Positions 41,401 to 61,271 of a stretch of DNA of 64,000 nt are shown here, piece by piece (within the stretch, counting starts at the first letter, position 1; each line of letters opens with the position of its first letter). The DNA is from Thalia democratica (taxonomy: Eukaryota): assembly GCA_965202585.1 (NCBI GenBank), contig OZ241830.1:434001-498000 (forward strand). Direction: 5' to 3'. The notes below the pieces were generated by a model. It was not told where the DNA came from. It ran no database searches and was given only the letters and a program-made list of their open reading frames with translations. The position numbers were made by a program, and so were the translations under genes.

Positions 41401-44400
41401 GTATTGTATGAATATTAAATTTTTAAATAGACTAAAAGCCCTACAAGTATTCACGTGTTTTTAAACGTATTTTTTCAGTTTTAATCTTATAATTGCAAGT
41501 TTTAAAAATAAAAAGTTCAATTTCATTGACCAAATGAAAAACTTTGTGGCTTTTGGGTAGCTTAGAAAAAATAATAAATCCTAAAGCATAGATACAGTAG
41601 CTTTATAATTAATATATAACTTTCGAAAAGGTGGAAATTAATTTATATAAACAGCTTATCAGTCATTATAATCAGTTAGTAGTACGTAAAAAGAAGATAT
41701 TGTGCAAAAACTTAGAAATAAAGCTGTAACTTTAATGATAAAAAAATTACACTTTTAGAACAAAGTCAAGAAAACATCGGCGATAGTCTACAGAGCCTAA
41801 GCTTGGAATCTCGTATGCCGTGAGACAAGCTTAAGATAGGGTTGATCATACCAATTCGATCATCAGACCACAAGTTTCGGTAGACTGAGATCGGTTTCGT
41901 TTTTATTAGGACTCATCAGTCAGTCACAACCGAAAAACCTGCAGTCGTCAATCTACAAACGGTTTATCATGCTTTACCATGAGGCAACCGTTTGTAAGTA
42001 ATATTAGAATAACGTAAAAAAAAATAGAACAAAAACTATTTGTATTTTAGGTAATATTCTAATGTTTTAAATTTTATTCGAGAAAAAAACTTATTTTATA
42101 AAAAAAAATTAATTGTTTTAGTAATTTCAGAAAAAACGAACAAAGATAGTCGTAACATAAGTAACCATTTTTTTTGTAAAATAAATTAAATAAGTATAAA
42201 TAAAATTGTATGAATAATCATTACAAATCAGTATTAATTTACTAAATAAAAAATTAAAAAAAGAAAACAAACAAGTTCTCACCATAAGATAATCGTTCAT
42301 GCACCTCACATTAGCCTGGACGTCCATATTGACCACTTTGGCCTCAATAAACATGTTGGGACCCCCAACTACCTGCCAACTGCAGTCCTTGTTGCTAGGA
42401 TACAGGTGGGGGTGGTTTGGGGAGAATATTTCCTCCACCTCCGATGCCATCACTATTCCCCCGCACACTGAAAAATATTAAAACTCTCTCCAAGTACAGT
42501 ATGTAGTTTTGAACTATAATGACTCGTTGGAATATATTTGACTAAAACCCAATATTTTAAAAGTTTTGTAAAAGTTTTAAGCAAACAATATGTATATTAA
42601 AATAAAGTTGTTTTAAGTTAATCTAAAAAGTAAACAAATAGTAGAACTAAACTAGTTAATATGTACATAAAAACTTGTATATGTAGATGTAGCTACTGTT
42701 CTTAATAAAATATTCAAAAATTTTTAAAACGTTTTAAAACCTTGATTTATTTCTTAAGCACAAAATTACGCTTTAAACGGTTTTAAAAAGTGTAGAAAAA
42801 TAAAATAGAACAACAGAAAAAGAACATTTAATGAAAATGAAAGAGAAAACGAACAAAATAGTTAAGATTTTAATGGTTACAGTTTTGTTAATTGTGGTTG
42901 TGGTTTGTTGATACAAATTAGTACCAAAGTCAGTTACAAGATAACTGTCAAGTAAAATGGTTTTGTTTTAGACGTTTAATAAGTTTGTTGTCAGTAATTT
43001 ACAACGGTATTATTAGTGTCGTTGACATTTGGAATGATAAATATTTTATGGTTTTTTTGTGGTTTTAAATAAGTTCTGGCTCCTAATTTAAATTGTTTGG
43101 TCCTATATGCGTAAATTTGGAAAAAAAAGTCCTTTATGATGTTTAAATAGTGTATAAAAGTACCAAAGTTCCACTAATGTAAATGTTTTATTGAAACATG
43201 CTACAAAAGTCTGTTAAAATATACTATACACAATTTTTAAATGGCAAATGAGTTCATAAAGGTTGCCGAGGAAAAATAATTGCCCTTTTAACGTGTTTTA
43301 AGATTTCGCAATGGTGAATATAATTCAAACATAAGATACTTTAAGTATAATGTCATCAGCATAGTGTAATAATAACGTATGTATATTTATAAATTAAATG
43401 AAATTATCACCATAAAAACACTTGAAGACTCTAAATACTCTTTCTTAGCATCCAAGATATATATGTTATTAAGAAAATTATAATTTGAATTTTTTATAGT
43501 AGAATTTGCACTCAGGTTTTTAAAGTTAGATAATATCATTAGTGGCTTGAAAAGTTTACATTTAGTTTGAAAACTACTTACTTGTCATTTTTTACTAGCA
43601 TAATGTAAACAAAAAGCCAAAACACTGGTACTACGTACTAGTTTTATCAAAACACTCATATGACGTAACAAGCTAGTTTTATGAAAACACTGTTATGACG
43701 TACCAATTTTATTAATACTTCAAAATGAAGTAACAAACCAGATTAATCAAAACAGTATTATGACGTGCGAGTTTTATTGAAACACTTTTATGATGTTACA
43801 GAATGGTTTATCAAATTTTTTATGACATAGCAACTTTATCAATACAGTTTTATAACAAACCAGTTTTATCAATACATCATTATGACGTAACAAACCAGTT
43901 TTATCCAGTCTGCAACTTGGTTTTCTTCCACTGTACTGTCCTGACAACTGGCATATCAGTTTATCGTCCCCATCAATCACGAACCCTGGTAAGCAATCGA
44001 ACTGGGTCATTCCCCCGAACCTGTGAGACTTGCGACCAACTATCAGGCCGTTGGCTGGCGCTGTTAGTACTCTGCAACCTGGAATAAGTTCGAATGTTGA
44101 ATGTTTTTTAGTTTGAAGTTGTTTTGTACAATTTGTTGTTACAGTTTTATGAATGTGTTTTTTATTTGATTTGTTAGGAAAGTGTACGAGTTTTGTTAAT
44201 ATGTTAAATGATTAGTATTGAATGAAATATATTAAGAGAAAGTAGTTAGAACTATTCACCATATAATTTATGATTAAATTTTGAAAATATAAAAAGTAAA
44301 TTGAAATAAAAAATTAATAAATAGTACTACAGTATCAGGTGAATTGTACATAAACAATGTGCTTATAAGTAAAAAGTTTATAGTCTTTTTTATAAAACTG

Positions 44401-47400
44401 CTTTTGAAAGTATAAATCAAAATTAATCAATTTTTTGTACTATTTAAGTAAAACAGTTCAACATATATAAAACACAAAATAACGTAAAAAAAAAATTAAA
44501 GTCAGAACTTTTAAACTTTACGAAAACCAATTACGAACTGCAATTCGAAAAAGCCTATAATAAGAAAAAAAGTTTAAGTTACAAAACTAGACACAACTTA
44601 AGACTTTTGACAAACAGTCTAAGAAAAAGGTAAATTTGCAAACTTTTATACCGAGCTAAAGTTCAAAATAGTTTTCAAATGTTTTTTTAATTGAACGTAA
44701 AACGAAAGAATTTCATTCTAAAAAAATTAGCAACTTAAATTACACTAATACAGTGAAACTAAGCCCTATAATTTAAAATTTACAATAAAATTTTTGTTGA
44801 GGTTACGTATGGAATTTAATTTAATAATTAGTGGTTTTCCTACAAAACAATAAAATTTAATTTGGTTGAAATAAACTTTGGTTAAAGTATGAGCTATAAA
44901 TCTTTATAAAAGCTTATTTTAATTTTGTTTTAGTACTAATTTCTTGTTTAAAACTATTACGTTGATAAAACGACCAAGTTGATAAACTTTTAAGCGTTTG
45001 GAAACTAAAGTATTTACTACGTTTTAGTTTTTAAAAAAGCGTAATACCATTAATTACAATAAAATACTATTAACGCGATTATTAGTGTAAGTCTGATAAT
45101 CCAATTAAATAATTTCATGGTAACTATACTGGTTTTGTTCTACTAAAATGTAAACAAAAATATGAAATTATTGGTTTTTAATCTTGTATACACTCTTATA
45201 CTTTTTGTAGTGGTAGTTTTCTGGGTTTGAATAAAAAATATAGAGTTACATTTTTAGCTATCGAAATTAAGCTTATTTAGAACTTGCCATTTATATTTTA
45301 ATTAAAACGTAAGCTCTTAAGTTTTACTTTTTGACGTTTAAGTTGTTTCTAAAACAAGCAACAAAATCTGTAAAAGGTAATATAAAAAATTAAGTATTAT
45401 TTACGTAAACTATTTTATTTATAATAGTATCACTAAAAATAGACTATATATGTTGTTGCTATTATATTGTTATGAAATAAACAAGTAAAATAAGCAGTTA
45501 TAAAACAAAAATAATAGTATTTACTAATAACAAAAATTGAAACGATATCAACAAGTTTAATGTCAAAATTTGTAATTTATTTCTAACGCGGTAAATTGAT
45601 TGAAGTAAAATTATATATATATGTATAAAACTGATTTAACCTTTAACTTATTGTCATTAGAGTTTACTCTATTCAAAAAATAAAAAGCTTACAAATGTAT
45701 AAACAGATTTGTGTAACTCTATTGAATTAAACTATTTATTAGTATTATATAAGATATAAATAGCTATTTTTTTGAATTTTATATCTATACTAATGAGGAA
45801 TGTTTTATAGATTTTTTAATTTCGTTTTTTTTTCAAAATAATAACAATATATAAATTTGCAAAATTCAAGAACTTAAAACACAGCTTATAACATACTTTT
45901 TTATATACTGTTTTTATAAAAGTTGAACTAGTTTTACAAACGTTAAGAAAATTCTATATTTATAAAAAATGAAAGTGTACTAACAAAAAATTTTCGTATC
46001 TTGCGTGACAGATTAAAATTGAACTTAAAAGCTACAATTAAACACACTTATTGCCTTTTTTAACATTTAAAAAGTTTTTAATCTGCAAAATAGACCTATT
46101 TGGTGAATCATGGGTATAATTAGGAGTTGTTATTTGTAATTATTGCAAACATTTCTTAAATATTGAAAATAGTGAAAACTTTTCTAAGCATGGAAATTTT
46201 TTTAGCTTGCAGTTTAATCAAACAATTAAAAAAAAATATTTTTGTGTTTTTTTCAAAAACAAACAGTTTAACTTTGAAAAAAGAGTAAAAGTATTGAAAA
46301 TAAATTTATATTTACAATTGTACATTTACATAGTATTACTACGCCAGTAATAGTTATATTTTTAAGCACTAAAAATTAAAAAAGAGCACCTACTGACTTA
46401 ATAAATGCTCTTTTAAAACAACACTGGGTACAAACAATTTCAAAGAAGGGAAATAACCTGTTTTGATGCACTTTGGGGGAGTGCCGAGCCAGCCTTCTGA
46501 CCCGCATAACAGTTCGATGGGCCCCACGACAACTTCTGTGGGGTCCGAACACTCGAACCTGACCGTGGTCCCTTCCGTCCAGGCTTTCTGGTCACTTGGG
46601 ACGGGTAAGACGTTTGTGTCGGTTTGCGGTATCGAACATATTATGTCCGTTTCTGTAAACGTTTGTGAGGAATTTTAATGAGTATTGAAATTAATATTCT
46701 ATTTTGAAAAGAAGCTTTAGTGTTTAAAATTTTGAAAATTAAATTTAAACAGTACAAATAACTTTTATTATGAGAACTTAGTTTAATTTAAGTTTTTAAG
46801 TACAGGTTGTAGATGTATATAAATTAAATAGAGATACTAAAAGACAGAAAAAAACGAACTAAATAGCATGACTATAAAGTACTTAGTTGTTTCTTCAAAA
46901 CTATAATGACGGAAAATTCTAAAATTATTTGAAACTCATAAACAAACATAGATGAACTGTTTTATAAATACTAATTAAACAAACAAACCCGCATGCATGC
47001 AACAGTATCTGACTTTGTAATCGTCACACTTCCCCCCTTCAACTTGATCCTCATCCAAGCATGACACTCCGTACGTCAGACTGTTCCTCACAGCTTGCTT
47101 TGTGACGTCATAACCACCTTGCGTAGTGCTTATCTGCATGCCAACAGGGTGCTCGCATATGGACGGGTTGTTGTTGCGGTGGTCTGACAGCAGTTCCCTG
47201 TTTCCATTGGATAGAAGCTCCTGATTGGTTGATTGGGTGTCCACATTGTTCCATGGTCCCCATGAGTTTGACGGACAGTGACCAACCGTGTCAAGGCCTG
47301 GTAGAAATAAAACTATTTGATAAAATACTTTACAGTTTGTCGATGTTATATGTGCTAGTGTGGTAGAATTAGTTAAAAAGAGTATTTTCAAAACAGTTTA

Positions 47401-50400
47401 TTTTGTACATTTCAAGTATTATTATTGTTGTGTATCTTTAAACTGTATAAAGATTTTAAAGTGTAATTTGACTAATATTTCTAATACAGTACATTAAGTA
47501 TTCGTTGATATTTTTGCTTTTCTTTTACTAGAAGTTGAGACTAGTACAAAAGTTTTTGAGAGCTTTTGTCTTATTTTTATAAAAACTTGAAAATATAATT
47601 AAGTTCAACAGTTTGGATTAAGTTTTTCCTAATAAAGTATATTTCAAAAAAATTAACTTTACAATTTTAAATACGCTTATCAATCTTAAAGTTATCAAAG
47701 TTTAAAATTTTTTATTTATTCATTATACTTCCTTACGAAGGTGTTTAATTATTCATCGTGTTAACTCTTTGCTTTGGGTTATGCCACATACTTTTAGAAA
47801 CACAAGCTATTAGATATTTAAGCACAAAAATTAAGTGTTTACTTTTATTACAGTTTGAAAGTATAATATATGAACTTTTTTTTGATAAAATCATTTTTAA
47901 TACTTTTTCAAAAAAAAACATTAAATTTAGATGTGAACGAGTCGTTTCTATGAAGTCAACGAAACTTAAAGGTCAAAATGCATGAAATTTAAATGATATG
48001 TTTGTTTTCTAAATAATATAGACCAAACTTTTCTGAAAACTTTAGTTGTAAAAAAAACTGATACTTACGTGTACTAAGTTTTTTATTCATTTTTTATATA
48101 ATGAAATGGAAGCTATCTATCATTATATCGATCAGATGAAAAAACTATATATAGCTTTTAAAATGCAGCTTACAATGTATTTCACACTTTCTAAATGATT
48201 GATTATTTTATGCTATTTTTCTTAACAAAAACAAAAACATTATTTAATTTGAAACTGACAAAACTTTACATAAACTAAAGTTCTAGCTCTTTCTTAAAAT
48301 CTTGCTTTTAGCTTTTTTATCAATATAAGTCAAAAATATTTTCAATCAGTAGGTTGTTTTTTAAATAATGTAACGTTAATAATTATGTATTTAAAAGAAA
48401 TGTTTTAAATTATTTACATAAGGTTTGAACAATCAACACGATTTATTTTTAAACAAAAAAAATTGTTAAACAAAACAAAAAAAGTGTTCAACAGTTTTAG
48501 AGTACAAACAAAGCTTATTAATAAACTTATTATGACGTCACAACGTACCGGGAGGGGCGCATCTGAAATGTAGGTCGATGTACTTTTCAGTACCGGGACA
48601 CGGGTCGCCTAATTGTGACGTAATAGCACGTAATGTGCACATCTGTTTACCCTGGCACTCCCCCCAAATTTGTTTGAACGCTGTTTGCGATTTGCATCGC
48701 GTGTTCATTGTGACGTCATTATCGGCTCTGCATCTGTGTGAAATAATTGGTATCAGTGCAAAGAAATTTTTTTAAAGTAAAAGTTATGAACTTGCTACAA
48801 AAGTTTGAAAAAATCTATAATTAAAAAAATGAAACATAACTTAAGTATTTTGCTTAAAACTATAAATTTTATTTCATTAAACTTATAAACACTTTATTAT
48901 AGCAAAAATAAAAAAAAGTATACTATTCAACTCAAGGTTACAAAATAATCTCACGTATGTGAGTCGGATCTCCCCCAGAAAGCATCTTCAATGTAAATAA
49001 CAGATCCCCTGTTCTTACAAGACACCCTGTTACCCACTCCTTCACAGATCTTCGTCACAAAAGTGTAAGGTGATCCTGGGATCATCAAGTCGTTCCCAAA
49101 CTGGATCTCCTCTGTTTGTTTTAATTAATAATTTTTAGCTTTTAATAGCTTTAATGACTTTGTTTTTATTTATTGGCTACTTAGATAGCACAAAAAAAGA
49201 GTGACATGAATCTCCTCTAAAAAATGTATTTTCCGTTTTTAATACATCAAGTATCAATGACCAAACTCTTAATGGTATTATAGCAAGTTTCTATGACAAA
49301 AGGCATCAAAATTTTTTTATAAAGTTATTAATTTTTTCTTTTCTATTATTTGTTTTTACGAACGAAAATAATAAAAGCGCAACTATTTTTTTATTTTTTA
49401 CGTGGTTTACTAAATAAAAGCACCTCAGGAGTTTATTGTTACTTTTTACTACTTTACTGCTTCAAAAGTCAGGTAAAAGTTTAGATTTTTTATATTGTAA
49501 GCATACTTAAAACTTGTAGTAAAGAGTTGACTTAAATTATCTATTTTTGAATAATAACTCTAGCGATTCGTACTTAGAATCATCAAAATAATGTTTGCAA
49601 GGAATTTAAAAACAAGTTTAATGTAAAAAAAATAAATATAAAATGTATTTTAAGCTTAACAGTATTATTTCTTGTGAACATTAAAAAAGTTATTTAAAAG
49701 CCGCAAAAAGTAATTAGAATATTAAACTTGAGCAACTAAAATTTGAGTAAAGTATATTCTAGTAATAATTAACTTTTACATGATAACATCTAGTAAGCGC
49801 GTAAACCGGTACATATAGGTACAGACATGTATTAAAACTTGTATTTTGGAATACAAGCTCATTTGTATGTTGACTTTAAAATACTTGGTGCACTTTTTAA
49901 AGTTGGAAATTTTTCAATTTAATTATCTGTTTATAAATATCCCTTTGTGTAATCACTGTAGGTATAAGAACAAATTTAGGTAAATTGTTAAGTTTCAGTT
50001 AAAATGCTTTATACGACTTTAATTTTCTTCACAGTTAAGAAAATTGTTACTTAATTAAAGTTAAAAAAAAGCTTTCCCAAAAACTAACTGTACCTAACTT
50101 TAGTTCAAAGCAGTAGTTCAAATACTTTAAGTGGTTTTTAATGTTTATAGTGGAAGTGAAAGTTTTCAGCAACTTTCAAACAAATCATAATATTTACGAA
50201 ATTCGAAGATAAATTCACCGCAAGCAAGTAGCCTCGCACGCGTTTAAAGTTAAACATCAAACTTTTAACTTCTAAAACTTGTAAGTTCTATTTGTTTTAC
50301 TTTGATGTTTACTTTATTCAGTTGTGATATTTCTTTTGTTTTATAAGGTTTTTGATATAAAAGTTTTAAGTTATTATAAATGAACATTGCTTATTGCTTC

Positions 50401-50846
50401 TAAAAATTTATACTAGTCTCGTTCTATTACATATTTAATTATATAAAGTAGTAATTTTCGTCTTTTTTTGTAAAGAAAACTTTTTTTTTAGATGCTTGAA
50501 GCTCATAGTATTCTTATTAAAAAGGTTCAATAGTCATTTTAAGTCAGAAACTTATTTACAAATATTTAATAAAAATATTTACACACAAAAATGTTACAAT
50601 CTCTCTAACTATCTACCTAATTTCTCTAAATACATTAACTTTCTACTTTTTGAAATTGAAACATTTTTTGTCATATAGAAGTATTTTAGGTACACTGTAA
50701 TCTGCGACTAACAAGTCATAATTTTATCATTATTATTAAATGAACAAAATTTCTATACAACATACAATATTACCTCTGTCTCCAGCTCTCAAAGTACATC
50801 TGCAGGCTTGAACAAACAAAAGGAGCAAGCAACAAGTCGAAAGCAT
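67..50846 (-). CDS. Gene A: giant secreted mosaic protein (SUEL lectin-WxxW-2xSushi-CUB-VWD/C8/TIL x2-EGF x2-at least 27 Sushi); 52 coding exons in window, 3' end beyond position 1
   Basis: Manual exon chain with GT-AG boundaries and consistent phases from ATG 50846 to exon 67-276; 9907 coding nt (~3302 aa) with no in-frame stop. Exon coordinates are given in the sub-features. FCGBP/zonadhesin-like VWD core, but no orthologue is recognised. Confidence 0.9.
4106..4195 (+). promoter_or_regulatory. Candidate promoter of gene C: CCAAT box, 12-bp palindrome and RFX X-box-like motif
   Basis: agCCAATcag 4106-4115; aactacgtagtt 4151-4162; GTTACATAGCAAC 4183-4195; all within 200 nt upstream of ATG 4288. 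Confidence 0.5.
4288..5618 (+). CDS. Gene C: nested antisense 3-exon gene, 317-aa protein with predicted signal peptide, possible TM helix and basic C-terminus; function unknown
   Basis: Exons 4288-4796 (CA|gtgagt), 4991-5162 (aacag|A ... GTA|gtgagt), 5346-5618 (gccag|ATC ... TAA) join in frame (954 nt). Lies in gene A intron 3109-7032. Confidence 0.8.
8002..14775 (-). repeat. Duplicated four-exon Sushi block: 14554/14117/13696/12990 vs 9876/9552/9149/8002
   Basis: Same order of module types in both blocks (PTKYNEVIYF type, FPMLQD type, NRTSDEKFKYG type, FDFTGNDY type). Confidence 0.85.
17926..18079. repeat. 28-bp direct repeat containing TGACGTCA (17926-17953 and 18052-18079)
   Basis: aagtgact(g/a)atgagattatgacgtcata, one mismatch. 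Confidence 0.8.
20912..21487 (-). CDS. Gene A calcium-binding EGF (21365-21487) and EGF with internal insertion (20912-21085)
   Basis: DIDECEESPC..TQCVNTEGSYKCICLDGY..C; DPCKENPCHENAKC[insert]FTCTCNEGFNGNGFFC. Confidence 0.88.
21764..23286 (-). CDS. Gene A C8, TIL and TILa-like domains (set 2), exons 23142-23286, 22546-22694, 22180-22304, 21764-21874
   Basis: YCGQITDPDGDFAICHGAVDPESFFESCVYDVC; CPEHSTF..SRCQNTCQDP..C..FTEDCVCDMGYLKDGDVCVRESECGC. Confidence 0.87.
23603..25024 (-). CDS. Gene A VWD domain 2 with GDPH site, exons 24742-25024, 24070-24222, 23603-23778
   Basis: CMSWGDPHYQTFD..KYDFMGACSYVM ... INGEEV ... LPEFYKTKVEGLCGNFNDDPDDD. Confidence 0.92.
25382..27727 (-). CDS. Gene A C8, TIL and TILa domains (set 1), exons 27571-27727, 27176-27308, 25718-25953, 25382-25506
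   Basis: C...CH..INPDFFFDSCVEDAC (C8); CGPNAYYSSC..C..C...[26 protein letters not shown] (TIL); NDCKLECKC..GKLAC..GC (TILa). Confidence 0.88.
28198..30690 (+). CDS. Gene D: nested antisense single-coding-exon gene, 830-aa Ser/Asn/Lys-rich, probably disordered protein with PLDLS (CtBP-binding-type) motifs
   Basis: 2.5-kb ORF in very AT-rich DNA. First in-frame ATG is 28198, with an in-frame TAG upstream at 28162. PLDLS at 29350 and 29518; variants ALDLS (~29122) and CLDLS (29665). Lies in gene A intron 27728-34028; pyrimidine-rich acceptor ending at 28140. Confidence 0.8.
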   Translation: MLNNIKMSNLSQTNLSLSLEKSSFETTDPTINSFVKVIYDDQIEEVCNEHSSSVDPTKCNLDSSVDPCVTSPLKQDTNAELLDISKLTSAKIFCDKSNIKKQAYKIKVRLPRLEANFCNSDSIAFSNPYHKIQAEKSNFTFTKAAKSAEKIQLNDVFEVKKSSSSLCLKKSTLFKKVSRIYQTIKSKISLFKPSSCELRFHKQYLENVTDWTKNKQKNFSDNQKSKSLYCVTNEVLTQNRDVNKEKLGVPINLINKSLSNYSTITCISSVFSEVSSKCSFENYEKNKTFIKSFVQNKIEPCKNQESGIALDLSVRSNKLRVSTQVENDNKNTTCGTYKEKYESQSLLSEHCGEGVLFVVKQLSEQVLSQQITCNNQQSSEYPDKPLDLSVKKMGAQQSTSAKLCDKSLINNNENVDGLMLKMNKHQLVVHKSFTDALEKSPLDLSFNSSHSQKSQENSLSTKVTSQSFASTNDESQLSNNLTKIENHISCLDLSYNSKKDYIKSSTNLEQNYHMEKSINQSFTNKTTSQNFYSIVNESELGNVNCFTNSDKNLFENQIISSNLSNVRNKNKVDSPKIEGNYFSTNCFNEFTPPLCNNLKNKSQATIETDLFNNCYSKFVADKLANRNDNYIDCKITDKNKTFIRPAAAIVSENSEHENLTRNDNNLNTTSKKLKKLTKSRQSVINISSENNSKSVTNSPKTGVLDDQKTSLKLKKVKMIKNKNRSNFNIPTPYKRLNGSISSISSSEGEQTISNISFKTIYTSPRVAPSTKSISSDSFKSFTDNKPADKKKTKTVMKGNYDDDLSSLGASTLVYLNQHFSNNTIDSNISN
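31974..32270. mobile_element. hAT-superfamily (Charlie-like) MITE, 297 bp
   Basis: TIRs cagtggtcttcaa / ttgaaaaccactg (12/13); 8-bp flanks tcatagag and ttctagag (6/8, resembling the NTCTAGAN target preference); subterminal gtgcac-type repeats. Confidence 0.75.
32387..32609. repeat. 39-bp direct repeat (32387-32425 and 32571-32609)
   Basis: tgataa(a/g)caatttataactccgtagaattgtgttattaa, one mismatch. Confidence 0.8.
34029..40430 (-). CDS. Gene A VWD domain 1, exons 40288-40430, 38988-39095, 36917-37085, 34029-34143
   Basis: CYGMGQSHFSTFDG..FPGDCSYVLAR ... INDELIELP ... VQYDG..VTLPQFFMGKIEG|LCGNYDGNGDND; phases 1-0-0-1-2 join in frame. Confidence 0.88.
40810..42467 (-). CDS. Gene A CUB domain, exons 42283-42467 and 40810-40981
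   Basis: CGG...IFSPNHPHLYPSNKDCSWQV...CMNDYLM / LFNG..KICG..SNENIMTINFHSDDRTTGKGF (canonical CUB). Confidence 0.9.
41788..41996 (-). mobile_element. Structured ~210-nt GC-richer intronic element around the hammerhead (probable Penelope-like or retrozyme remnant)
   Basis: Hairpins 41954-41996 (11-bp plus 5-bp stems) and 41798-41833 (8-bp plus 4-bp stems); possible closing helix CUGCAG 41944-41939 with CUGUAG 41793-41788; no ORF. Confidence 0.5.
41875..41936 (-). ncRNA. Degenerate minimal type I hammerhead ribozyme motif (Penelope/retrozyme-like)
   Basis: Minus strand: UUUCGGU-UGU-GACUGA (stem I 5') CUGAUGA GUCCU-AAUA-AAAAC (stem II with two C.A mismatches) GAAA CCGA UC (minimal stem III, cleavage after C41889) UCAGUC-U-ACCGAAA (stem I 3'). 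Confidence 0.7.
43638..43910. repeat. Degenerate minisatellite (~30-36 bp unit, agttttatcaa.acac..tatgacgtaacaa.c) overlapping a Sushi exon donor
   Basis: About 8 imperfect copies; the last copy runs into the exon end at 43896-43910. Confidence 0.75.
43896..46652 (-). CDS. Gene A two N-terminal Sushi/CCP domains, exons 46458-46652 and 43896-44078
   Basis: CSIPQ..VRFECSD..VVGPIELLCGSEGWLGTPPKC and CRVLTAPANG..TQFDCLPGFVIDGDDKLICQLSGQYSGRKPSC; both phase 1-1. Confidence 0.88.
46989..47297 (-). CDS. Gene A WxxW (mucin/CILP-type) domain exon
   Basis: CPSNSWGPWNNVD...E....R...P.ICEHPVGM...GVSCLDEDQVEGGKCDDYKVRYCC; phase 1-1 exon, 309 nt. Confidence 0.85.
48549..49111 (-). CDS. Gene A SUEL-type (rhamnose/galactose-binding) lectin domain, exons 48955-49111 and 48549-48733
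   Basis: KICEGVGNRVSCKNRGSVIYIEDAFWGRSD..C...ECQGKQMCTLRAITSQLGDPCPGTEKYIDLHFRC matches the SUEL pattern CEG..(Y/W)GR..C.GK..C...GDPCPGT.KY....C. Confidence 0.88.
50774..50846 (-). CDS. Gene A exon 1: start codon and signal peptide
   Basis: caaaATG then MLSTCCLLLLFVQACRCTLRAGDR (hydrophobic core); phase-1 donor G|gtaat joins the next exon in frame. Confidence 0.8.
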
Positions 50847-53800
50847 TTTGCTCAGTATGATTTCAAACGTCTCATTTCGGCTAATATACCTGAAATCTTC
50901 AAATACCTCCTCGGGCGATTTCAGCGCAATTTGTTAATATTTTCCGATTACCGTAATTATAAGCCACCACACTCATCTAAGTAGGTAGTTTTTCGCAAAC
51001 TTAACTTTATTTTGAGTTATAAAATTTTCTATTTCTATTCTTAAAGCTATGTTTTAAATTTCACACTTAAAGAAAACTTACTTTTGTTTTGAACACCGTA
51101 ATTATAAACCAAAACATTTATCTAGTTTTCTAGGTAATTTTTCATAAACTAGACTTTCTTTAATTTTTTTTTTGGGCCTAATATTTTTTTTAAATTCCAG
51201 AACTAAAGTAAACTTTTTATTTGATTAAAGTACTGTAATAAAAATACGGATTTTTTCAAAATTTCGTTTGTTAAAACATCTTTTTGTACTGAAAATTTTT
51301 TAATTACTTTTTTTTTTTTGATTTTATGAATGCTTGTATTATACTTGATATCTTTAAGTACTCTTTTTTTTTACAAAGTTTTAAAGTTATTTGAAAAAGA
51401 TTTCTTAAACATAAAACTAAACCTGGTAGAAGTTAAAATGTGATAGTAAACAAGGTAAATATTTCAACCAACTTTAATTTTATTTTTCTCAATTTCTTTG
51501 AATTGGAAACGTTTTTCACTTTTGAATACTTCTTTTGGTAGTATTTGAGTTTATAATAATACAAACTTCTTTTTGTTTTGTTAACTTTGTCAAACAAGTT
51601 TAAATTTCTACTACTCATTGAAGTGTTTTGACTATTAATATGTTTTCTAAAAGCATTTTACTAAAAGTTTCAAAATACCGATTTTCATATACAAAAAAAA
51701 ACTTATAAAACTAATTAAAAAGTTATTGAAGTATAAATTTTTTGATGGTAGGCTTTAGTTTGTAATAGGTAAGAGTATAAAATTATCTACGACCAAAAGT
51801 TATTTTAGTTTTCTTATAATGGTTAGTTAATATAACTGTATTTATCTTCGAGTGTACCTTAAGTATTTAAAAAAAGACTAAAAAACTTTAATCTTTGACT
51901 AGGTAGTACATACCTTATTTAATTTAGAAAACTCAAAAAAAAGTTCTAAACAATCATTTTGTATGCTTATCATAACTAAAACTGTTTTTACATAATAACT
52001 CTTTTATACAATACAACCATTTCAAAATATGGAGCAGAAAGTTATCGAAATAACTTCGCAGCAATTAAAACAAAGTAAACAAACTAAATGTTTATAAACT
52101 TAACTGTAGTAAGCATATAACTTTAATCAATTGTCTAATTTAATAGACTTTATAGTATATTAGTTTGATATAATATGTGTAAGCTCATACTTTTTGACCG
52201 AAAAGTCTTGTTTTAGTAAGTATGTGTTAAAAAAAAAAATTAATAAAATTTTTTGAACAACTTAAACATTATGTTTAGGTGATTTTTATGGTTTACATTT
52301 AATTGTCAAAACAAAAAAAAATCATTCAAAAACAAAAAATAAAACAAGCAACAAAATATTTAAACAAACGAGAAAATTATACAATTAAAAATTAAAAATT
52401 TATTTATAAAAGTAAAATATATACTTTTTAGAATATTAATTGTATTAGTTTCAATGAAGAAATATCTTTTTTTGAACTTCTAACAAAACGTAAAAAAGAC
52501 ATTACAAAATAAACATATATAGTATCAAAGTTTACGCTTAAAATAAAAACGTAATTTTTAATTTTCATAGAATTTTTGATTAATCATTACTAAAGGATTA
52601 CACAAACAAATATGAATAATAAAAGTAGCGAACACATGTATAAATAAATTAACAAATAGCGTCTTTTGTTTGAATAAATTGTTAACTATGTTGTAATAAC
52701 AAACGTGAAATTTTTATGTTACAGAAAATTTATTTTTGTTCGTTTAAAGTTTCATCTTACATTGTAAATTTTTTTACGACATAGGGAGACATACTCTACA
52801 TACTTTATCAGAAAAATAAGAAGTACATGAATTCGAGGTGTATTGAATTTTGATTTTTTTTGGTTTTTTATGTTTTTTATAAAAAAACGTATTTATCAGA
52901 GGTTAAACAAATGTTAGAGTTTAATATTTGTTTAGAAGCAGATATGAAAAATAGAAAGTAAAAATAACAAATATAAATGTATAAAAACTTGTAAGTTTAA
53001 TAATAACTTATTATAAATTTCTTTTTTAAGTTAAACCGTAAAAAAACATTGAATAAACGATAAAAACAAAATTAAAACTATAGTTTGTACAACTTATCGT
53101 ATTTAAACCAGAATAAACTTTTTTTTCTTTTTTCTTTTGTATCTTTTATAACAGCTAAACTTTATTATAATACAACATTAAAAGTTGTGGAATACAATTT
53201 GTTTTTAAAAGCTCACTATATACAACAAAAACTATTTAAATTTGTTTTATTTTAACCACAATATACATAAAAGTATATCCGATTTTAATTTTCATAGCTA
53301 ACTTTTGTCTGTTATACGATTACAGTAATTAACTAAAATAACAATATAATTTTTTAAATTATGTTGCATTTAAATTTGGTGTTTTAACTGGCTGTAATTC
53401 AAAGTGCACTTTATAATACTAGAAGCACTTAAACTCAACAAGTTACTGTAATAACAATTAAGCAGATTAGAACAGCAAATCTGATTATCTAGTAGGAAGT
53501 ATCTAGTCACTTAAAGCAACAATGTGTGATTGTAACTATAGAAACTGCTAATTGCTGCAAACTAATAAGGGAGTTTTTTTTGTGTCTAGCCTGAAAATAC
53601 TGGCAACTTATAATTGATGCTGTTAATAACATAGTATAAACTTAATATTTATCTTTTGAAAATCAATTTAGTAACCTTAAAACAAATATTAGATTTAAAA
53701 CAGTTCACGTAAAAAAAATGCATCAGAAAAACTTTTCAGGGTTAAAACTTAATACCATATAGTGTTACAGTTAAGTTATTTAATCAAGTTATACAAAACG

Positions 53801-54604
53801 TAAAAACATTAAAAAACAGCTAATAAAAGGCTAAATTTATAAATGCACCACAAAAAATAGGCCGTAATTAAAATAATGCTTTGTTAATATAAAAGATATT
53901 AAAAGCGTCATTCTAATATACAAAAATATTTAGTTTTTTTTCAATGATAACAAATTGAATTAACTATTTGTAAAGCTTTTACTTAAAAAAATCGATTTTA
54001 TATGTATCATAATTGAGTTATTTTTTTGTTTATAAACATGCTAGACTTCCATAAATAAAAAGAATTGCTAAAGTTTTTTCAATCACAAACAATGTACTTA
54101 AATAATTTTACTAAGGTACTTTTTACAACGCTATAATTGCCTAAGTCTTTTTTTCATTAGTATTATAAATTGTTATAGGTGTATAATGTGTTTGTTCGAT
54201 ATTTACATGTTCAACTTTTTATAAACTTGAAAAAATCCAAGTTGAAAATAACTTTCAAAAAGTTTTAATCAAAAGTAAACAAAAAGTTAAATACAACTTT
54301 GTTTTAACATATTTCTACCAATTTACAACGTCTTTAAAGTTTTAAAATTTGTAAGTGAATTCGAATCATGAAAAGTGCTTAGAAACGACTTTTTAAATAA
54401 TTTTACTTCGTAATTTAGTAAGTTATCATTCAAAATTGTAAAAAAAGTGAAACTAAATTTCTAACAGAGTTTATTAGTTTGAAAAATTTCGTTAAAAAAT
54501 GTCCAAACAAACTTTACTTAAATTGTTTTTACAAGTAATTAGTTTTCAAGTGTTGGTGCAGCAATCAATAACTGACAACGGCCATATTGTTGTTACAACC
54601 AAAG

Positions 54605-54612
54605 TATAAAAG
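54605..54612 (+). promoter_or_regulatory. TATA box of gene B
   Basis: TATAAAAG ~60 nt upstream of ATG 54666. Confidence 0.6.
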
Positions 54613-54665
54613 CCCCAACTTCAAAACTTTTGTCATCAAACTTACTTGTCAACTCAAGTTGAATC

Positions 54666-57600
54666 ATGAAGTTTATCGTGTTGTTCTCACTCTTGGGACT
54701 TTCCCTAGCTAACACTTTCAACAGCCTTGATGGCGGTATTGTCGGACCAGGTATGTTGAATAGTATTTATTCATTGGACTGTAAATGAATCAAACTGTTT
54801 TTGCAATTGTTTAGTGTAGATCTACTATCAATTAATAATGTTTATAGATAGTTCGGTTTTCTTCTTACTATTTTAAGTAGTAAAATAAACATGCAAATAG
54901 TTATGGGTTTAAGCTGCAATTTTCAGAAAAATATTCAAACCTTTAGGAAATGGTTTTGCTCAAACTTTTTTTTTTTACCATATACCATCTTTAAAGTAAA
55001 TTAAGCAACTATCTGAAAAATTTAATAAAAAATATGAAAGTTGCACTGGTATTTATAAATGTTATAGAAATATTTATTGAAACAAAAAACTCATTATGAA
55101 CTTGCTTGTTTGATCAAGTAACAAATAATAAGTTGGATTAAGTCGATATCATAAATGTTTATTAAACTACACATAAACTAACTTCGGAAAAACTAACTTT
55201 TAATTCATTGTATCTAAAACTTTTATTTTTGAAAACTTTTGTATTTAAATCATTGTTATAACAAAAATATTTCTAATTTTTAGGACAACGTCAAGGTCAA
55301 GTGATAGGAAGAGGTAAATTAAATTTTATTTAATATTTATTTAGTTTTTATTTTGCTTTTTGTTTTGTTTTATTTTTATAACTGTTTCAATATCAGCTTC
55401 AAAAGTCAAAGTATTTTGTCAGCCTCATTAAATAAACAGCTCTATGAAGTATTTTAATTTGCTTTAATACTTATAATAAAAAAATATTTTTGTTTCTTTT
55501 AGTCACAAGACATTAAAGATAATATGTTTTGACTTGCATATTTTTGTTTTAGTTGTAACCAAGTTAAAAACTCCAAAGTTGTTTTTTTTTAGTTTATTTA
55601 CTACAATATGAAAAAAAACCTAAATAATCAAAATTTTATAAATTTCAGGAATCTACTCACCAACACCAGTTGCTAGAAAAGGAACCGGTTAGTTTTTATT
55701 TGTTTTAAATGTTTTGTAATGACACTTTTAAACATAAACGGTGAAAATGTGTAAACATCATAACTTATAAAAGCGAACCCTGTCCCTGTCTATGTTTTAT
55801 TTTTTACCATGTTAAATGTTTACAACTTAAACAAAAAACTTTTGTATTAGAGTTTCTACTTGTATGTGGTCAATAAGTACAAACAAAGTTAGTAAAATCG
55901 TACAGACGGCAGAAAACAAAATCGTACTTATTACTGAACAGTTTTTCACAAGAATGGAGGGTGCTTATAAAAAAGGCGACATTTGAATTTTCAGCTGAAA
56001 GCTCTTTTACATTTGGTCATTACCACAAAAAAAAATATTGTGAAAAATCTTAATTGATCTAAAGAACAGTAAAAAGGGGGGTAAAAATTTTTCTTGAAAC
56101 AACCCGATGTAAAATGTATGGGACCTTATAAATTCGATGTTCAATTTTTTGGCTTGAAATTGTTCTACACGTAAGAATTATCACAAAACACATTCTGCAA
56201 AATTTTAGACGATATAGGTAAGTTTCAAAAAGGCATTTTTTTACTTTCTATAATTTTTTATAACTTTTCGTAACTTTAAGTTATTTTGAAATGATCAAGA
56301 AATGTCTTCGTAAACTATTTTCAAATCGTCTAAAATTTTGCAGAATGTGTTTTGTGATAATTCTTACGTGTAGAACAATTTCAAGCCAAAAAATTGAAGA
56401 TCGGATTTATAAGGTCCAATACATTTTACATCGGGTTGTTTCCAGAAAAATTTTTTCCCCCCCTTTTTACTGTTCTTTAGATCAATTAAGATTTTTCACA
56501 ATATTTTTTTTGTGGTAATGACCAAATGTAAAAGAGCTTTCAGCTGAAAATTCAAAGGTCGCATTAGTTGTAAGCATCCTATTTAGCATATTCACATCAT
56601 TTTACTAAATATGTTTACTGCAGCTTACTAAACTTCTTCTAATAATTTTACTATATATATTTTTTACAGGAACTTACTAAAACTATTTTCACAGGTACTT
56701 ACTACAACCCACCACAAAAGAGAGGTGCTTACGTCCCACCATACGCTCCACACTACAACCCAACCCCACAAAAATCAACCGGGTATGTTCCAGCCCCACA
56801 AAAGAGAGGTGCTTACGTTCCCCCATACGCCCCACACTACAACCCAACCCCACAAAAATCAACCGGGTATTACCCACAACCAACAAAGACCCCTACCTAC
56901 GGTGGTTAGTTTTGTGGTATATAAAAGTCTTCAGTTCACTTACTTGTAAATGTTCAAGGAAGGTTTAAAAAACTTTAAAAAAAGTTATAACTTTGGTTTT
57001 CTAAACACAGAGAATAGCTCTTTACAACTAGTATGTACTGGGTAATAAGTTGATAAAGTTGTTTGTACAACAAGGTCTTTAAGCTTTAAATTAAGGTTGA
57101 AAAACATGCAGTACAAGGTCATACTGAGATAAAAGATACCTTTATGCCTAAATGCACAAAATTACCATGTAAAACAGTAGTAAAAGCAAATTAAAATTTT
57201 ACGAAAGCTTAACCTTCCTTTTGGAACTCAATATACTACTTTAACTTTAATTAAAAGCCCATAAACTTATGATTATCGCATAAGCTGCTGTTGTAATAAA
57301 GTTTTTAGAAGCATTTATATAGTTTGTATTGAAGAATTTATAACAATACTTATGCAGTATTTTATTGATTGTTATTTTGCTATTTAATGATTATTAAAGT
57401 ATAAAAGTAAACTAAAAACTGCTATGTGTATAAAAATATGTAAACTTAAACAATGATTACTTAAAATTTTTAAGATCACTTTTTTTACTACTGTTAAAAT
57501 CAGACAAGGAAAAAAAAAACTGTTTTTATTTTCAAAAATTTTAATAAAAACAAACTACTCCACTCATTATGTTTAAAAATGTGACGTCATAAAATAACTA

Positions 57601-60600
57601 TAGGCAAGACCTACGGAGGCAGAACTTACACCCCAACCTACGGAAAGAAGACCTACACTCCATCATACGGAAAGAAGACTTACACCCCAACTTATGGTGG
57701 TAAGGCGTTCGCTAATATTTTTGTTTGATTTCTTAACATCGTGTTGTTGAACTGTTTCAAACTGTTATCAAGTTTACTAAATTTTTTTCTAACGAGATCG
57801 TTAATGTTTTACTATGACTTAATAATCATACTATTCTTTGTTTAACTTTATTTGTATTACCTCGTTTAACTGCAGAACAGCTCATCTGACACAAAAAACC
57901 CTGAAAGCAAAATATAAATTTTGTAATTATTAAAAATGATCGAAATAGGTTTTAGTCAAAAAACAAAATCTATGTTGTAATCTGAATTCATACGACGTAA
58001 TTGATGATATTTTCCATAGGTAAGACTTATGGAGGCAAGACCTACGGCGGAAACACTTACACCCCATCATATGGTAAGAAGACCTACACTCCATCATACG
58101 GAGGTATTTTCTAATATACATAAATTTGTCATATTGGTGTTGTTACATATCATGGTTTATTATATATAAACACACTTTCAAAAATAACTTTTAAAATTTT
58201 TGAAATATGTGATTGACACCTTTTGGTATTTGAAAACTAAAATTTGAAAAAAGTGAACATATTACGTACAACCATCTTCTTTTAATTATGACGTCATAAC
58301 ACAGGTAAGACTTACGGAGGCAAGACCTACGGTGGAAACACTTACACTCCATCATACGGTAAGAAGACTTACACCCCAACCCCAACCTATGGAGGTATTA
58401 ATTTAAATTGTTTAACATTTAATATCAAATTTAATGCTATTTTTTGGTTTTGTTCTAAGAAAAGCGTTACAAGTGAAACCTATTACTAGCGATTTAAAAA
58501 ATATGTATTTTTGTACATCATTAGTGACAACCAGATAAATGATGATTTAAAAGTAAAAGAAAATATGTTGTTGACAATGGTTACATGACAATCTAAATTT
58601 AGAAAAAAAATGTTAAGTGGCAATATCTTAAAAAGTAATACACATTTAAAAAGAACAAAAAAAACAGTTTTAGATCTTATTTATAAGACTTTGATATAAA
58701 AAAAAACATGTATATTTCCTAAAGGATGATTTTTGAAATTAATAAAAATAAATATATCTAAACAAATTTTAGCCATAACTCATAAAATATTTAAAACTTT
58801 GCAATCCCTTTTTAAACAATTTTTTTCTTCGAGATAAGACCTTTTATAAAACACTTAATTGTCCGAATTTGAATGGTCGTGCACCTATAAAAAACCACAA
58901 AACTTACAAAAAAATATTTAAGGAAGTTATGCTGTACTTACACTATTAAATTATCAGCTTTAACCTTCCAAATAAATGCATATTGAAAAAAAAATTGAAC
59001 AAAAACTAAACATATTGAGCATGAACATTTATTCAGTCAAAATAATGCGGTATTTTTTTGTTTTTAATAGAAAAGATATACTAGCATATAAATACTTGCG
59101 GTCAATTATTTTTTCAAGAGCAATCTTGCAAAATCATCTTATAGGATTTGCATAACTATTTAATTCAAACATTACACATGAAAATAATTGTGATGCTAAA
59201 AGCATGTGTCAACACATGCATTTATTTCTGTTTTATTTTAAAATTTTAGCAAATAAATGCACTGGTTGGCAAATTGTTTTCGTTTTCATTAAACGCACTG
59301 TATCTACGGTTAAGTTAAGTTTTTACATTTTTCTAGTTATTTTTAGATACAGACACCTTTTGTGAATCTACGCACATTGTAATACAGCATAAGTGCGTAA
59401 CTAAACGAGAGGTAGCAAATATATTTGCTGTATTGACTGTTTTTTAACAATGCATTTGATTAAATCAATTTTTGGACTTTCCTACTTTTAATCACTTGTT
59501 TAATCAACTAGTTTTCATTTAAGTTGCATTTATGAATGTAGTTTAGTGTTGTAATGGCTGTCTTTATTTGAAAAAACAGTGGTTGAATGCAAAAAAGTTT
59601 ATTGATAAAAATTGTTTTTGTGTAGACTTTTTTTTCTAATTTGTTACTTGCCCAAATAAAATTAAACCTTTTTGCATGGTATTATAAAAAATTTGGAGTT
59701 TTATAGAGTTGAAATAACATTGTATGCTATAAATATTGTAAAGAAATGAACATTGTACCTTATTTAATTCATTTAAATACATAAAGGGGGGTTAAGACAC
59801 TTAAGATATAAAGGGCGAAGTCATAGAGTTCAATAGGTTCCAAATGGAAGGCACAAACTAAAAATGCAAATTTCTAAATTTTATAAAAAATACATTTCTT
59901 CCTATATATTTAAAAATATTTAATTAAAACTTTTATATTTCTTGAGAACTCTAAAATGCGTAATTAAACGAGAATGCGTAACCAAATTAGTACGTAGATT
60001 CGCAAGAGGTGACTGTAATGTCCTAATTTGATCAAAATGTTTTACGAAAATTTCTTCGAAATGATACTAAATTGTACAAAAGTCTAACAAGAATTTTAAG
60101 TTAAGCTTTTCTAAATTACTTTGTTAATGTTTGACTGTGCTTTAATAATCATAAATAAAGTTCAAGGTAAATTTAAGTCAAAAAATATAAATCTTTTGAC
60201 GTTATAAAAAAAATTTAAAAGGTAAAACTTACGGAGGAAAGACCTACGGCGGAAACACTTACACCCCATCATACGGTAAGAAGACCTACACTCCAACTCC
60301 AACTTACGGAGGTATTTTATTTATGAGTATAAATTCGTCATATTGATGTGATTGCGTGATATACGGTTTATTATATACAAAAACACTTTCAAAACTAACT
60401 TTTTAAATTTTTGAAATATGTGATAGACACCTTTTGGTATTTGAAAACTCAAATTTGAAAAAAGTGAACATATTACGTACAACCATCTTCTTTTAATTAT
60501 GACGTCATAATACAGGTAAGACTTACGGAGGCAAGACCTACGGTGGAAACACTTACACTCCATCATACGGAAAGAAGACCTACACCCCAACCTACGGAGG

Positions 60601-61271
60601 TTTGAATTTACATTTATAATTTCTTCATACTAATAGGTTTATACAAAAAAAAAAAAAAAACTAAAATGTCTTTCAACAAAGTTTTACAATAGAGTTTTAC
60701 TGTTATATATAATAACTAAATTCCGAGTTTAAAAGTACAACTAACGTCTTATAAAATTTGCTTATATTTAAAAAAACTTATAAAAAAGAAATATGTTGAA
60801 AAATAAACGGTTTTTAATACCATAAATTAGTATAAAAACTTTGTTTTTTACTTAAAATACTTAATAAAAAGTGTATATGTATTTACATATGCTCTAAGTA
60901 TCAGCTTTTTGACGTCACTATGTATTTCCAGGTAAAACTTACGGAGGAAGAAACTACGGAGGTGAATATTGTTTAAACTACTTTCCGTGAAAGGAAACAA
61001 TTTTTATATAAATTACTTAAAATTATCATTTTTGATTGTTTTAAAATATATCAGCAATATGTCAAAAATTACTTAAAAAAAAAAATGTCGTAAAAAAGTA
61101 AGTTTAAAGTATGAACATTGAAAATAAGTATCTGCCTTACAACGTACAAACAAATACAGCTACCAAGGTCTTTCAAAGTTACAAAAATAAGTAAATAGTA
61201 AACTTTGCTATATTTTATACAGATACTTTGAAATCATAATATAAATTTCAGGTAAACAATACGGTTACTAG
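54666..61271 (+). CDS. Gene B: secreted Tyr/Gly/Thr/Pro/Lys-rich repeat protein, 285 aa, 11 coding exons
   Basis: Exons 54666-54750 (MKFIVLFSLLGLSLA signal), 55284-55313, 55649-55687, 56695-56904, 57604-57699, 58020-58103, 58305-58394, 60222-60311, 60516-60599, 60932-60961, 61252-61271 (TAG). All introns are phase 1 and GT-AG; 858 nt. Repeats KTYGG, KKTYTPSYG, TPTYG. Confidence 0.88.
55958..56580. mobile_element. Foldback/MITE-like element with ~256-bp inverted arms and ~110-bp spacer in gene B intron 3
   Basis: 55958-56213 is the reverse complement of 56325-56580 with few mismatches; no clear TSD. Confidence 0.8.
58020..60599 (+). repeat. Duplicated exon-intron-exon block of gene B: 58020-58394 vs 60222-60599
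   Basis: The ~200-bp introns 58104-58304 and 60312-60515 align nearly end to end, sharing long identical tracts such as gaaaaaagtgaacatattacgtacaaccatcttcttttaattatgacgtcataa. Confidence 0.9.

Follow-up and report, generated by a model that had tools for sequence, protein, structure and literature searches.

A 64,000-nucleotide stretch of the genome of the salp Thalia democratica (contig OZ241830.1, positions 434,001 to 498,000; hereafter, the window) carries two divergently oriented genes whose products appear to be secreted: gene A, which encodes a giant acidic mosaic on the minus strand and runs past the start of the window, and gene B, which encodes a small, basic, tyrosine-rich repeat protein on the plus strand. 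A first-pass annotation had read the two as a coregulated, charge-complementary pair that would form an extracellular glue or matrix, with start codons diverging 3.8 kb apart; the distance from the A ATG (50846-50844, minus strand) to the B ATG (54666, plus strand) is indeed 3,820 nt. Because introns range from 0.2 kb to several kilobases, the gene models were assembled manually from stop-to-stop frames and splice sites. The whole window is AT-rich (22 to 34% GC). Both N termini, likewise in agreement with that annotation, have the makings of a signal peptide when read by eye: the core is hydrophobic, and positions -3 and -1 are occupied by small residues.

The model of gene B comprises 10 exons, all bounded by AG/GT, and ends in a stop codon; all nine introns are in phase 1, so that every exon after the first starts with a split glycine codon. 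Exon 1b is newly recognized, the initial model having had nine exons. The product is 275 amino acids long (260 when mature), and the mature chain consists of 19.6% Gly, 19.2% Thr, 18.5% Tyr, 12.7% Pro, and 11.2% Lys, with no cysteine, a net charge of +33, and an isoelectric point (pI) of 9.85. An earlier description of B as lysine-rich and nearly devoid of acidic residues stands in its second half (1 Asp and 0 Glu), whereas in its first half it needs amending: Gly, Thr, and Tyr come first and Lys second. Exons 3 to 7 are variants of the repeat consensus KTYGGKTYGGNTYTPSYGKKTYTPTYG. The block carrying exons 4 and 5 (58018-58381) is 90.7% identical to that carrying exons 6 and 7 (60220-60592), which indicates that the array grows by block duplication.

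A profile of the B repeat exons, compared against 1.84 billion representative proteins, yielded only two matches, both of the same gene family: an exon-plus-intron frame on a 653-bp ENA contig and a spliced, transcript-derived protein from a marine eukaryote catalogue (run ERR1712168). Two more transcript proteins were recovered by a further search (runs ERR1712183 and ERR1712202). In the resulting three ocean-metatranscriptome orthologs (P0002, P0003, and P0004, in the order of these runs), a single frame runs through the conserved signal peptide, an SLDGGIVG motif, exons 1b and 2, and the first of the KTYGG repeats, which confirms the junctions 1-1b-2-3 in a relative and demonstrates expression of the gene in animals from the wild. 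In all three orthologs, the signal peptide is separated from the first long repeat by one or two additional short modules (VQHPDSPRVGRG, VQYGPRPVARKGTG), at a site occupied in this genome by a single 13-codon exon. Two of the three transcripts end in frame-shifted tails that are probably assembly errors within the repeats. No paralog of B was found in its own genome, where it is single copy; the only other genomic matches to B were weak, came from an acidic repeat of a different contig that is unrelated to it, and were set aside. Furthermore, B matched no Pfam family and no Atlas look-alike, and two metagenome scans, one using exon 2 and the other the profile of the repeat exons, revealed no related locus. 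B is a real, spliced, lineage-restricted gene whose expression is seen as orthologous mRNAs. The chain is predicted to be disordered: an AlphaFold2 model of the ortholog P0002 has a predicted local distance difference test score (pLDDT) of 56, a predicted template modeling score (pTM) of 0.12, no helices, and only two 3-residue strands.

Gene A, the domains of which were identified by Pfam scans of single exons, would encode, judging from these domains, a giant secreted mosaic of the matrix or mucus type, with a lectin/WxxW head, a CUB domain, VWD-C8-TIL multimerizing modules, EGF domains, and an acidic Sushi array. Open reading frames (ORFs) in the neighboring DNA carry the gene some 17 kb beyond the window start: the Sushi array, with further Sushi and EGF exons on the same strand, extends to about -7,100; beyond it lie exons of VWD, C8, and TIL-like type and then a tail that reaches to about -17,000. 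When relatives were sought with exon-sized pieces of A, all matches were short fragments of ENA DNA with 67 to 97% identity, a search length that is uninformative about full-length kin; a fragment 96% identical to the WxxW exon lies in an ENA metagenome contig. Within the array, higher-order blocks are apparent between 8006-10095 and 12994-14767 (minus strand), where four or five Sushi types recur in the same order, and a very acidic 58-residue Sushi type beginning CEPPNNITNGYYEPL occurs at least six times. A plus-strand ORF of 841 codons (28165-30687) is nested within an intron of the first VWD-C8-TIL module; it matched no Pfam family.

The acidity of the A array was assessed in a census of 38 segments spanning Cys1 to Cys4, which together comprise 2,414 residues and of which about 36 are genuine Sushi domains. 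The claim that this array is rich in Asp and Glu is borne out: D+E amount to 18.1% and K+R to 7.8%, the net charge is -249, the pI is 4.2, and 35 of the 38 segments are net negative. The charge complementarity between A and B is real. The array is clearly acidic, yet its excess of negative over positive charges amounts to no more than about one in 10 residues, on disulfide-bonded, folded modules.

Codon usage is extremely biased in B and separates it from A. In B, TAC outnumbers TAT 42 to 6, AAG outnumbers AAA 24 to 6, AAC is used 10 times and AAT never, and CCA encodes 31 of the 33 prolines; in the Sushi array of A, by comparison, TAC:TAT stands at 61:61 and AAG:AAA at 63:85. The nested ORF (GC content at third codon positions, 0.24) and the BTB-type gene that follows B are AT-biased. 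A codon set as narrow as that of B, within a 25%-GC genome, is typical of structural proteins made in abundance.

TABLE 1 Features of genes A and B and of the DNA between them (window positions)
Feature	Position	Strand	Content and basis
A exon 1	50774-50846	-	ATG and signal-peptide-like MLSTCCLLLLFVQA, followed by CRCTLRAGDR; phase-1 GT donor; sequence reading
A SUEL-type galactose/rhamnose-binding lectin exon	48541-48771	-	Pfam PF02140, E 3e-12
A mucin-2/CILP-type WxxW exon	46996-47292	-	Pfam PF13330, E 7e-15
A second Sushi-like exon	46393-46674	-	4-Cys pattern; without Pfam match
A Sushi exon	43777-44211	-	Pfam PF00084, E 1e-7
A CUB domain over two exons (42130-42477, 40775-40993)	40775-42477	-	Pfam PF00431, profile positions 1-62 and 60-108
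A first VWD-C8-TIL module	25691-40491	-	Pfam PF00094, PF08742, PF01826
A first module, VWD pieces	40279-40491 and 36855-37136	-	Pfam
A first module, VWD-like GLCGNYDG motif	33995-34147	-	ORF translation only
A first module, C8	27102-27308	-	Pfam PF08742
A first module, TIL	25691-26008	-	Pfam PF01826
A second VWD-C8 module	23088-25032	-	Pfam PF00094 (E 2.5e-11, 1e-6), PF08742 (E 9e-11)
A two EGF exons, one calcium-binding	20868-21500	-	Pfam PF07645, PF12947
A acidic Sushi array, ~27 domains in the window	1-20524	-	Pfam Sushi on sampled exons and Cys-pattern census
Divergent spacer	50847-54665		3,819 nt, 22-25% GC
TATAAAAG box	54605-54612	+	61 nt upstream of B ATG; sequence reading
B exon 1	54666-54750	+	Signal peptide MKFIVLFSLLGLSLA and NTFNSLDGGIVGP; phase-1 donor at 54750; matched by P0002, P0003, P0004
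B exon 1b	55649-55687	+	GIYSPTPVARKGT; AG/GT, phase 1-1; tblastn of orthologous transcript proteins and sequence
B exon 2	56695-56904	+	Two 28-aa repeats PQKRGAYVPPYAPHYNPTPQKSTGY; 84-nt tandem repeat at 96%; conserved in orthologs
B exon 3	57604-57699	+	First repeat exon, KTYGG / TYTP[ST]YGKK type
B exons 4 and 5 (58020-58103, 58305-58394) with intron	58020-58394	+	
B exons 6 and 7 (60222-60311, 60516-60599)	60222-60599	+	Copy of exon 4-5 block
B last two exons (60932-60961, 61252-61271)	60932-61271	+	End in ...GKQYGY and stop
Exact TGACGTCA copies in B	57582-57589, 58289-58296, 60500-60507, 60910-60917		Usually as ATGACGTCAT

The spacer between the two genes is single copy in the genome and contains no coding-looking ORF; a scan of positions 40000 to 64000 at the Rfam gathering thresholds matched no family. 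In a bidirectional promoter, as usually defined, divergent transcription starts lie less than about 1 kb apart and use one common promoter region. The start codons of A and B are farther apart than that, which makes the spacer too long to be a classical promoter of this type, and B has its own TATA box. Moreover, the frame-translated 5' untranslated region of transcript P0003 and the genomic DNA immediately 5' of the B ATG share, in our own reading, the string SNLLV, which places the transcription start of B close behind the TATAAAAG box; downstream of this box, the untranslated region of B is colinear with the orthologous transcript. A scan of the spacer for repeats and inverted repeats gave mostly AT-rich low-complexity matches and no notable mirrored or shared elements. 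Beyond the low-complexity matches, it found one diverged duplication of about 145 nt beside the start of A: a 30-nt element beginning ACCGTAATTATAA lies at 50950-50979 and again, 145 nt away, at 51095-51124, just upstream of the A ATG, and the pair looks like a diverged tandem duplication of the proximal upstream region of A. The duplicated region includes a TATA-like TATAAT on the A strand. A sigma-70 promoter scan of the spacer remained at background level, with a model that is irrelevant to an animal. As for the head-to-head orientation itself, it is one of four possible arrangements of two genes and carries no statistical weight.

One short motif, TGACGTCA, is strongly overrepresented in the window, with 22 copies against 0.35 expected, of which 18 fall in A and 4 in B. 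The copies in B precede the 3' splice sites of repeat exons by 10 to 20 nt, in the zone expected for a branch point or pyrimidine tract, and were carried along by the duplication of the exon blocks; degenerate copies are also found near 57995 and 60196. The 18 sites in A (within 438-48718) are mostly coding and read x-Asp-Val-x, with a few that read Met-Thr-Ser; of two copies near splice sites, one precedes an acceptor by about 20 nt (10559) and the other follows a donor by 9 nt (48533). The motif was considered as a regulatory mark shared by A and B and rejected: it is absent from the spacer and says nothing on the coupling of the two genes.

On the other side of B, the next gene lies about 10 kb away on the plus strand (window-equivalent 70989-72844, contig positions ~505000-506850), with a 482-codon exon whose translation, read by eye, appears to be that of an intracellular protein of the BTB/BACK type. 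A downstream neighbor of this kind would place B outside any cluster of secreted-protein genes other than A.

Among characterized secreted proteins, B appears to resemble mussel mfp-1 and the Gly/Tyr/Lys cement proteins of tubeworms in composition and repeat design, by analogy and without homology. Mfp-1 and similar proteins contain DOPA (3,4-dihydroxyphenylalanine) and are made of decapeptide repeats rich in Tyr, Lys, Pro, and Thr. Both mfp-1 and B have a signal peptide, a pI near 10, almost no acidic residues, no cysteine, and a disordered chain (predicted in the case of B), and in both the chain is built of tandem short repeats with regularly placed tyrosines beside Lys, Pro, Thr, or Ser (KTYTPSYGK in B). 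B is a secreted, basic protein of the same general design, that is, of tandem short Tyr/Lys/Pro/Thr repeats, and no homology to a known foot protein was found in the profile search of 1.84 billion proteins, in Pfam, or in Atlas. B differs from mfp-1 in its far higher content of Gly and Thr and in that each of its repeat blocks is a phase-1 exon of its own; furthermore, DOPA is only putative in B, and the salp is pelagic and attached to no substrate. Foot protein mfp-1 is able to coacervate alone (PMC12817120).

The cement of the sandcastle worm (Phragmatopoma) combines Gly/Tyr/Lys-rich polycations with a polyanionic partner through complex coacervation. B matches the cationic side as a polycationic, secreted protein with about 20% Gly, 19% Tyr, and 11% Lys, and an acidic secreted protein, A, is encoded next door. 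In the tubeworm, the polyanion is disordered and rich in phosphoserine, and gene linkage is, to our knowledge, not part of the system. A, in contrast, is folded as a mosaic of Sushi and VWD domains and modestly charged (about -10 per 100 residues in the Sushi array, whose domains have four cysteines each) rather than a highly charged disordered polyanion, and no Ser-rich or acid-run exon was seen among the ORFs on the A strand in the window. The general premise drawn from this system by the first-pass annotation is sound, as a review describes the condensation of oppositely charged cement proteins in the tubeworm gland (PMC12817120).

The same holds for its statement that VWD/lectin/EGF proteins recur in invertebrate adhesives, for which the temporary adhesive of flatworms provides an example: ap1, a protein with a C-type lectin-EGF-VWD-C8-TIL-EGF array, acts with the Lys-rich, low-complexity proteins ap2 and ap3 (PMC9229212). 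A giant cohesive protein with a separate, cosecreted, Lys-rich repetitive protein is the closest functional analog of the proposed pair, and A, like ap1, joins lectin, EGF, VWD, C8, and TIL domains in one secreted giant. The differences are several. The lectin of A is of the SUEL type whereas that of ap1 is C-type; in flatworms, the cationic part is the low-complexity partner (ap3, and the ap1 flanks in Macrostomum), with no polyanion scaffold; ap2 and ap3 each run to thousands of residues, and Tyr-rich chemistry is not central in that system. Coexpression of the partners has been demonstrated in flatworms and would be conjecture for A and B. Gel-forming mucins, VWF, and FCGBP-type and CILP-type proteins offer another comparison for A, which shares VWD-C8-TIL assemblies with this family (two in the window and further VWD/C8/TIL-like ORFs beyond it) and a WxxW domain with mucin-2 and CILP. 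A differs from gel-forming mucins in its ~36 acidic Sushi domains and its head of SUEL lectin and CUB. Such mucins are further marked by a central O-glycosylated domain rich in Pro, Thr, and Ser and by a cystine knot at the C terminus; no Pro/Thr/Ser-like ORF was seen on the A strand within the window, and the C terminus of A lies outside the window.

Taken together, the evidence leads us to favor, with moderate confidence, the view that A and B are two genuine genes, independent as far as shown, that stand head to head by chance, and that B is an abundant protein of a structural or adhesive type. Each gene would be driven from its own proximal promoter. B would be a small, secreted, disordered polycation of short Tyr-Gly-Lys-Thr-Pro repeats, most likely deposited in extracellular material such as the tunic or cuticle, the attachment sites of zooids, or the mucous net, where its tyrosines might be oxidized to DOPA or cross-linked and its lysines might bind anionic polymers. 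By analogy, the composition, exon structure, and codon bias of B look like those of an abundant structural or adhesive protein of the kind of mussel mfp-1 or tubeworm Pc-1; the gene structures, the compositions, the expressed and spliced orthologs of B, and its restricted distribution are shown, whereas we infer that B is disordered and abundant, how its tyrosines react, and where it acts. Indirect evidence leans toward independent regulation: the length of the spacer, the promoter of B, the differing codon bias, and the modest charge density of A. Several points weigh against this view. A and B may be coexpressed, and the spacer, at 3.8 kb, is rather short by the standards of an 802-Mb genome in which the next gene after B is about 10 kb away, so that enhancers could be shared. 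The codon counts of B are inflated by recent exon duplication, duplicated exons not being independent; the prediction of disorder comes from a single-sequence model of an ortholog fragment; and DOPA or cross-linking in B is suggested purely by analogy.

The adjacency of A and B is not demonstrably functional, and adjacency and opposite charge are the only grounds for the proposed coupling; functional coupling of any kind seems to us unlikely. In its original form, the proposal holds that A and B are coregulated and cosecreted and associate by charge, through complex coacervation or matrix assembly, into a glue or matrix. The opposite net charges (about -249 in the A array and +33 in B) speak for it, as do the signal-peptide-like N termini of two divergent neighbors 3.8 kb apart and two precedents, namely, the lectin-EGF-VWD-C8-TIL cohesive protein of flatworm temporary glue with its separate Lys-rich low-complexity proteins (PMC9229212) and the condensation of oppositely charged proteins in sandcastle-worm cement (PMC12817120); in addition, the SUEL lectin of A could bind O-glycans on the Thr-rich B. 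However, the charge density of A is only about -0.10 per residue and is borne by disulfide-bonded folded domains, the spacer is 3.8 kb long with a separate TATA box for B and without any shared or mirrored elements found in it, the codon biases of the two genes differ sharply, and no paralog of B repeats the pairing. We regard cosecretion and charge association as unlikely. In a bolder version, B would be the first mfp-1-like protein known from a pelagic tunicate to act by tyrosine-based cross-linking or adhesion. One 3.8-kb control region would serve both genes, so that the same cells would produce A and B, and the two would assemble outside the cell by charge, by a lectin grip on the O-glycans of B, or by both into a salp-specific material, for example, the pads of chain zooids or the tunic surface. 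This version, too, appears unlikely.

Two further readings concern B by itself. As a polyprotein precursor, B would be cut at dibasic sites (QKR/G and GKK/T) into small Tyr-rich peptides, some with a C-terminal Gly for amidation, comparable to the DOPA/TOPA (trihydroxyphenylalanine) peptides of tunicate blood cells. The sequence contains two QKR sites and repeated YGKK motifs, and DOPA- and TOPA-containing peptides and proteins are reported from the blood cells and holdfasts of tunicates, which make many small DOPA-containing peptides with roles that include defense and adhesion (PMC3039461; PMC13079984). These reported molecules are, however, small and compositionally unlike B; the peptides of the Halocynthia holdfast, for instance, have high contents of Glu/Gln, Ser, and Gly, and ~50% of their residues are catechols (PMC13079984). 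Furthermore, B is without the acidic spacers that are usual between bioactive peptides, cleavage would release a heterogeneous set of peptides (7 to about 25 amino acids), and its lysines show the even spacing of mfp-1-type repeats; we consider a precursor highly improbable. Alternatively, B could be the cationic part of the mucous feeding net or of another mucus, binding acidic polymers other than A. A polycationic, Thr-rich protein with a codon bias that suggests continuous, massive production would suit this role, which we also hold to be unlikely; as it differs from the favored account of an abundant structural or adhesive protein only in site and partner, it is a variant of that account rather than a departure from it.

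What the locus yields at present is a clean model of an expressed, lineage-restricted Tyr/Lys/Gly/Thr/Pro repeat gene, together with a domain map of its giant acidic neighbor. If A and B proved to be coexpressed and to assemble with each other, a chordate would have an extracellular material of two components whose genes are linked. It would also be a new, sequence-unrelated instance of Tyr/Lys repeats serving wet adhesion or the curing of a matrix, although the animal never settles.

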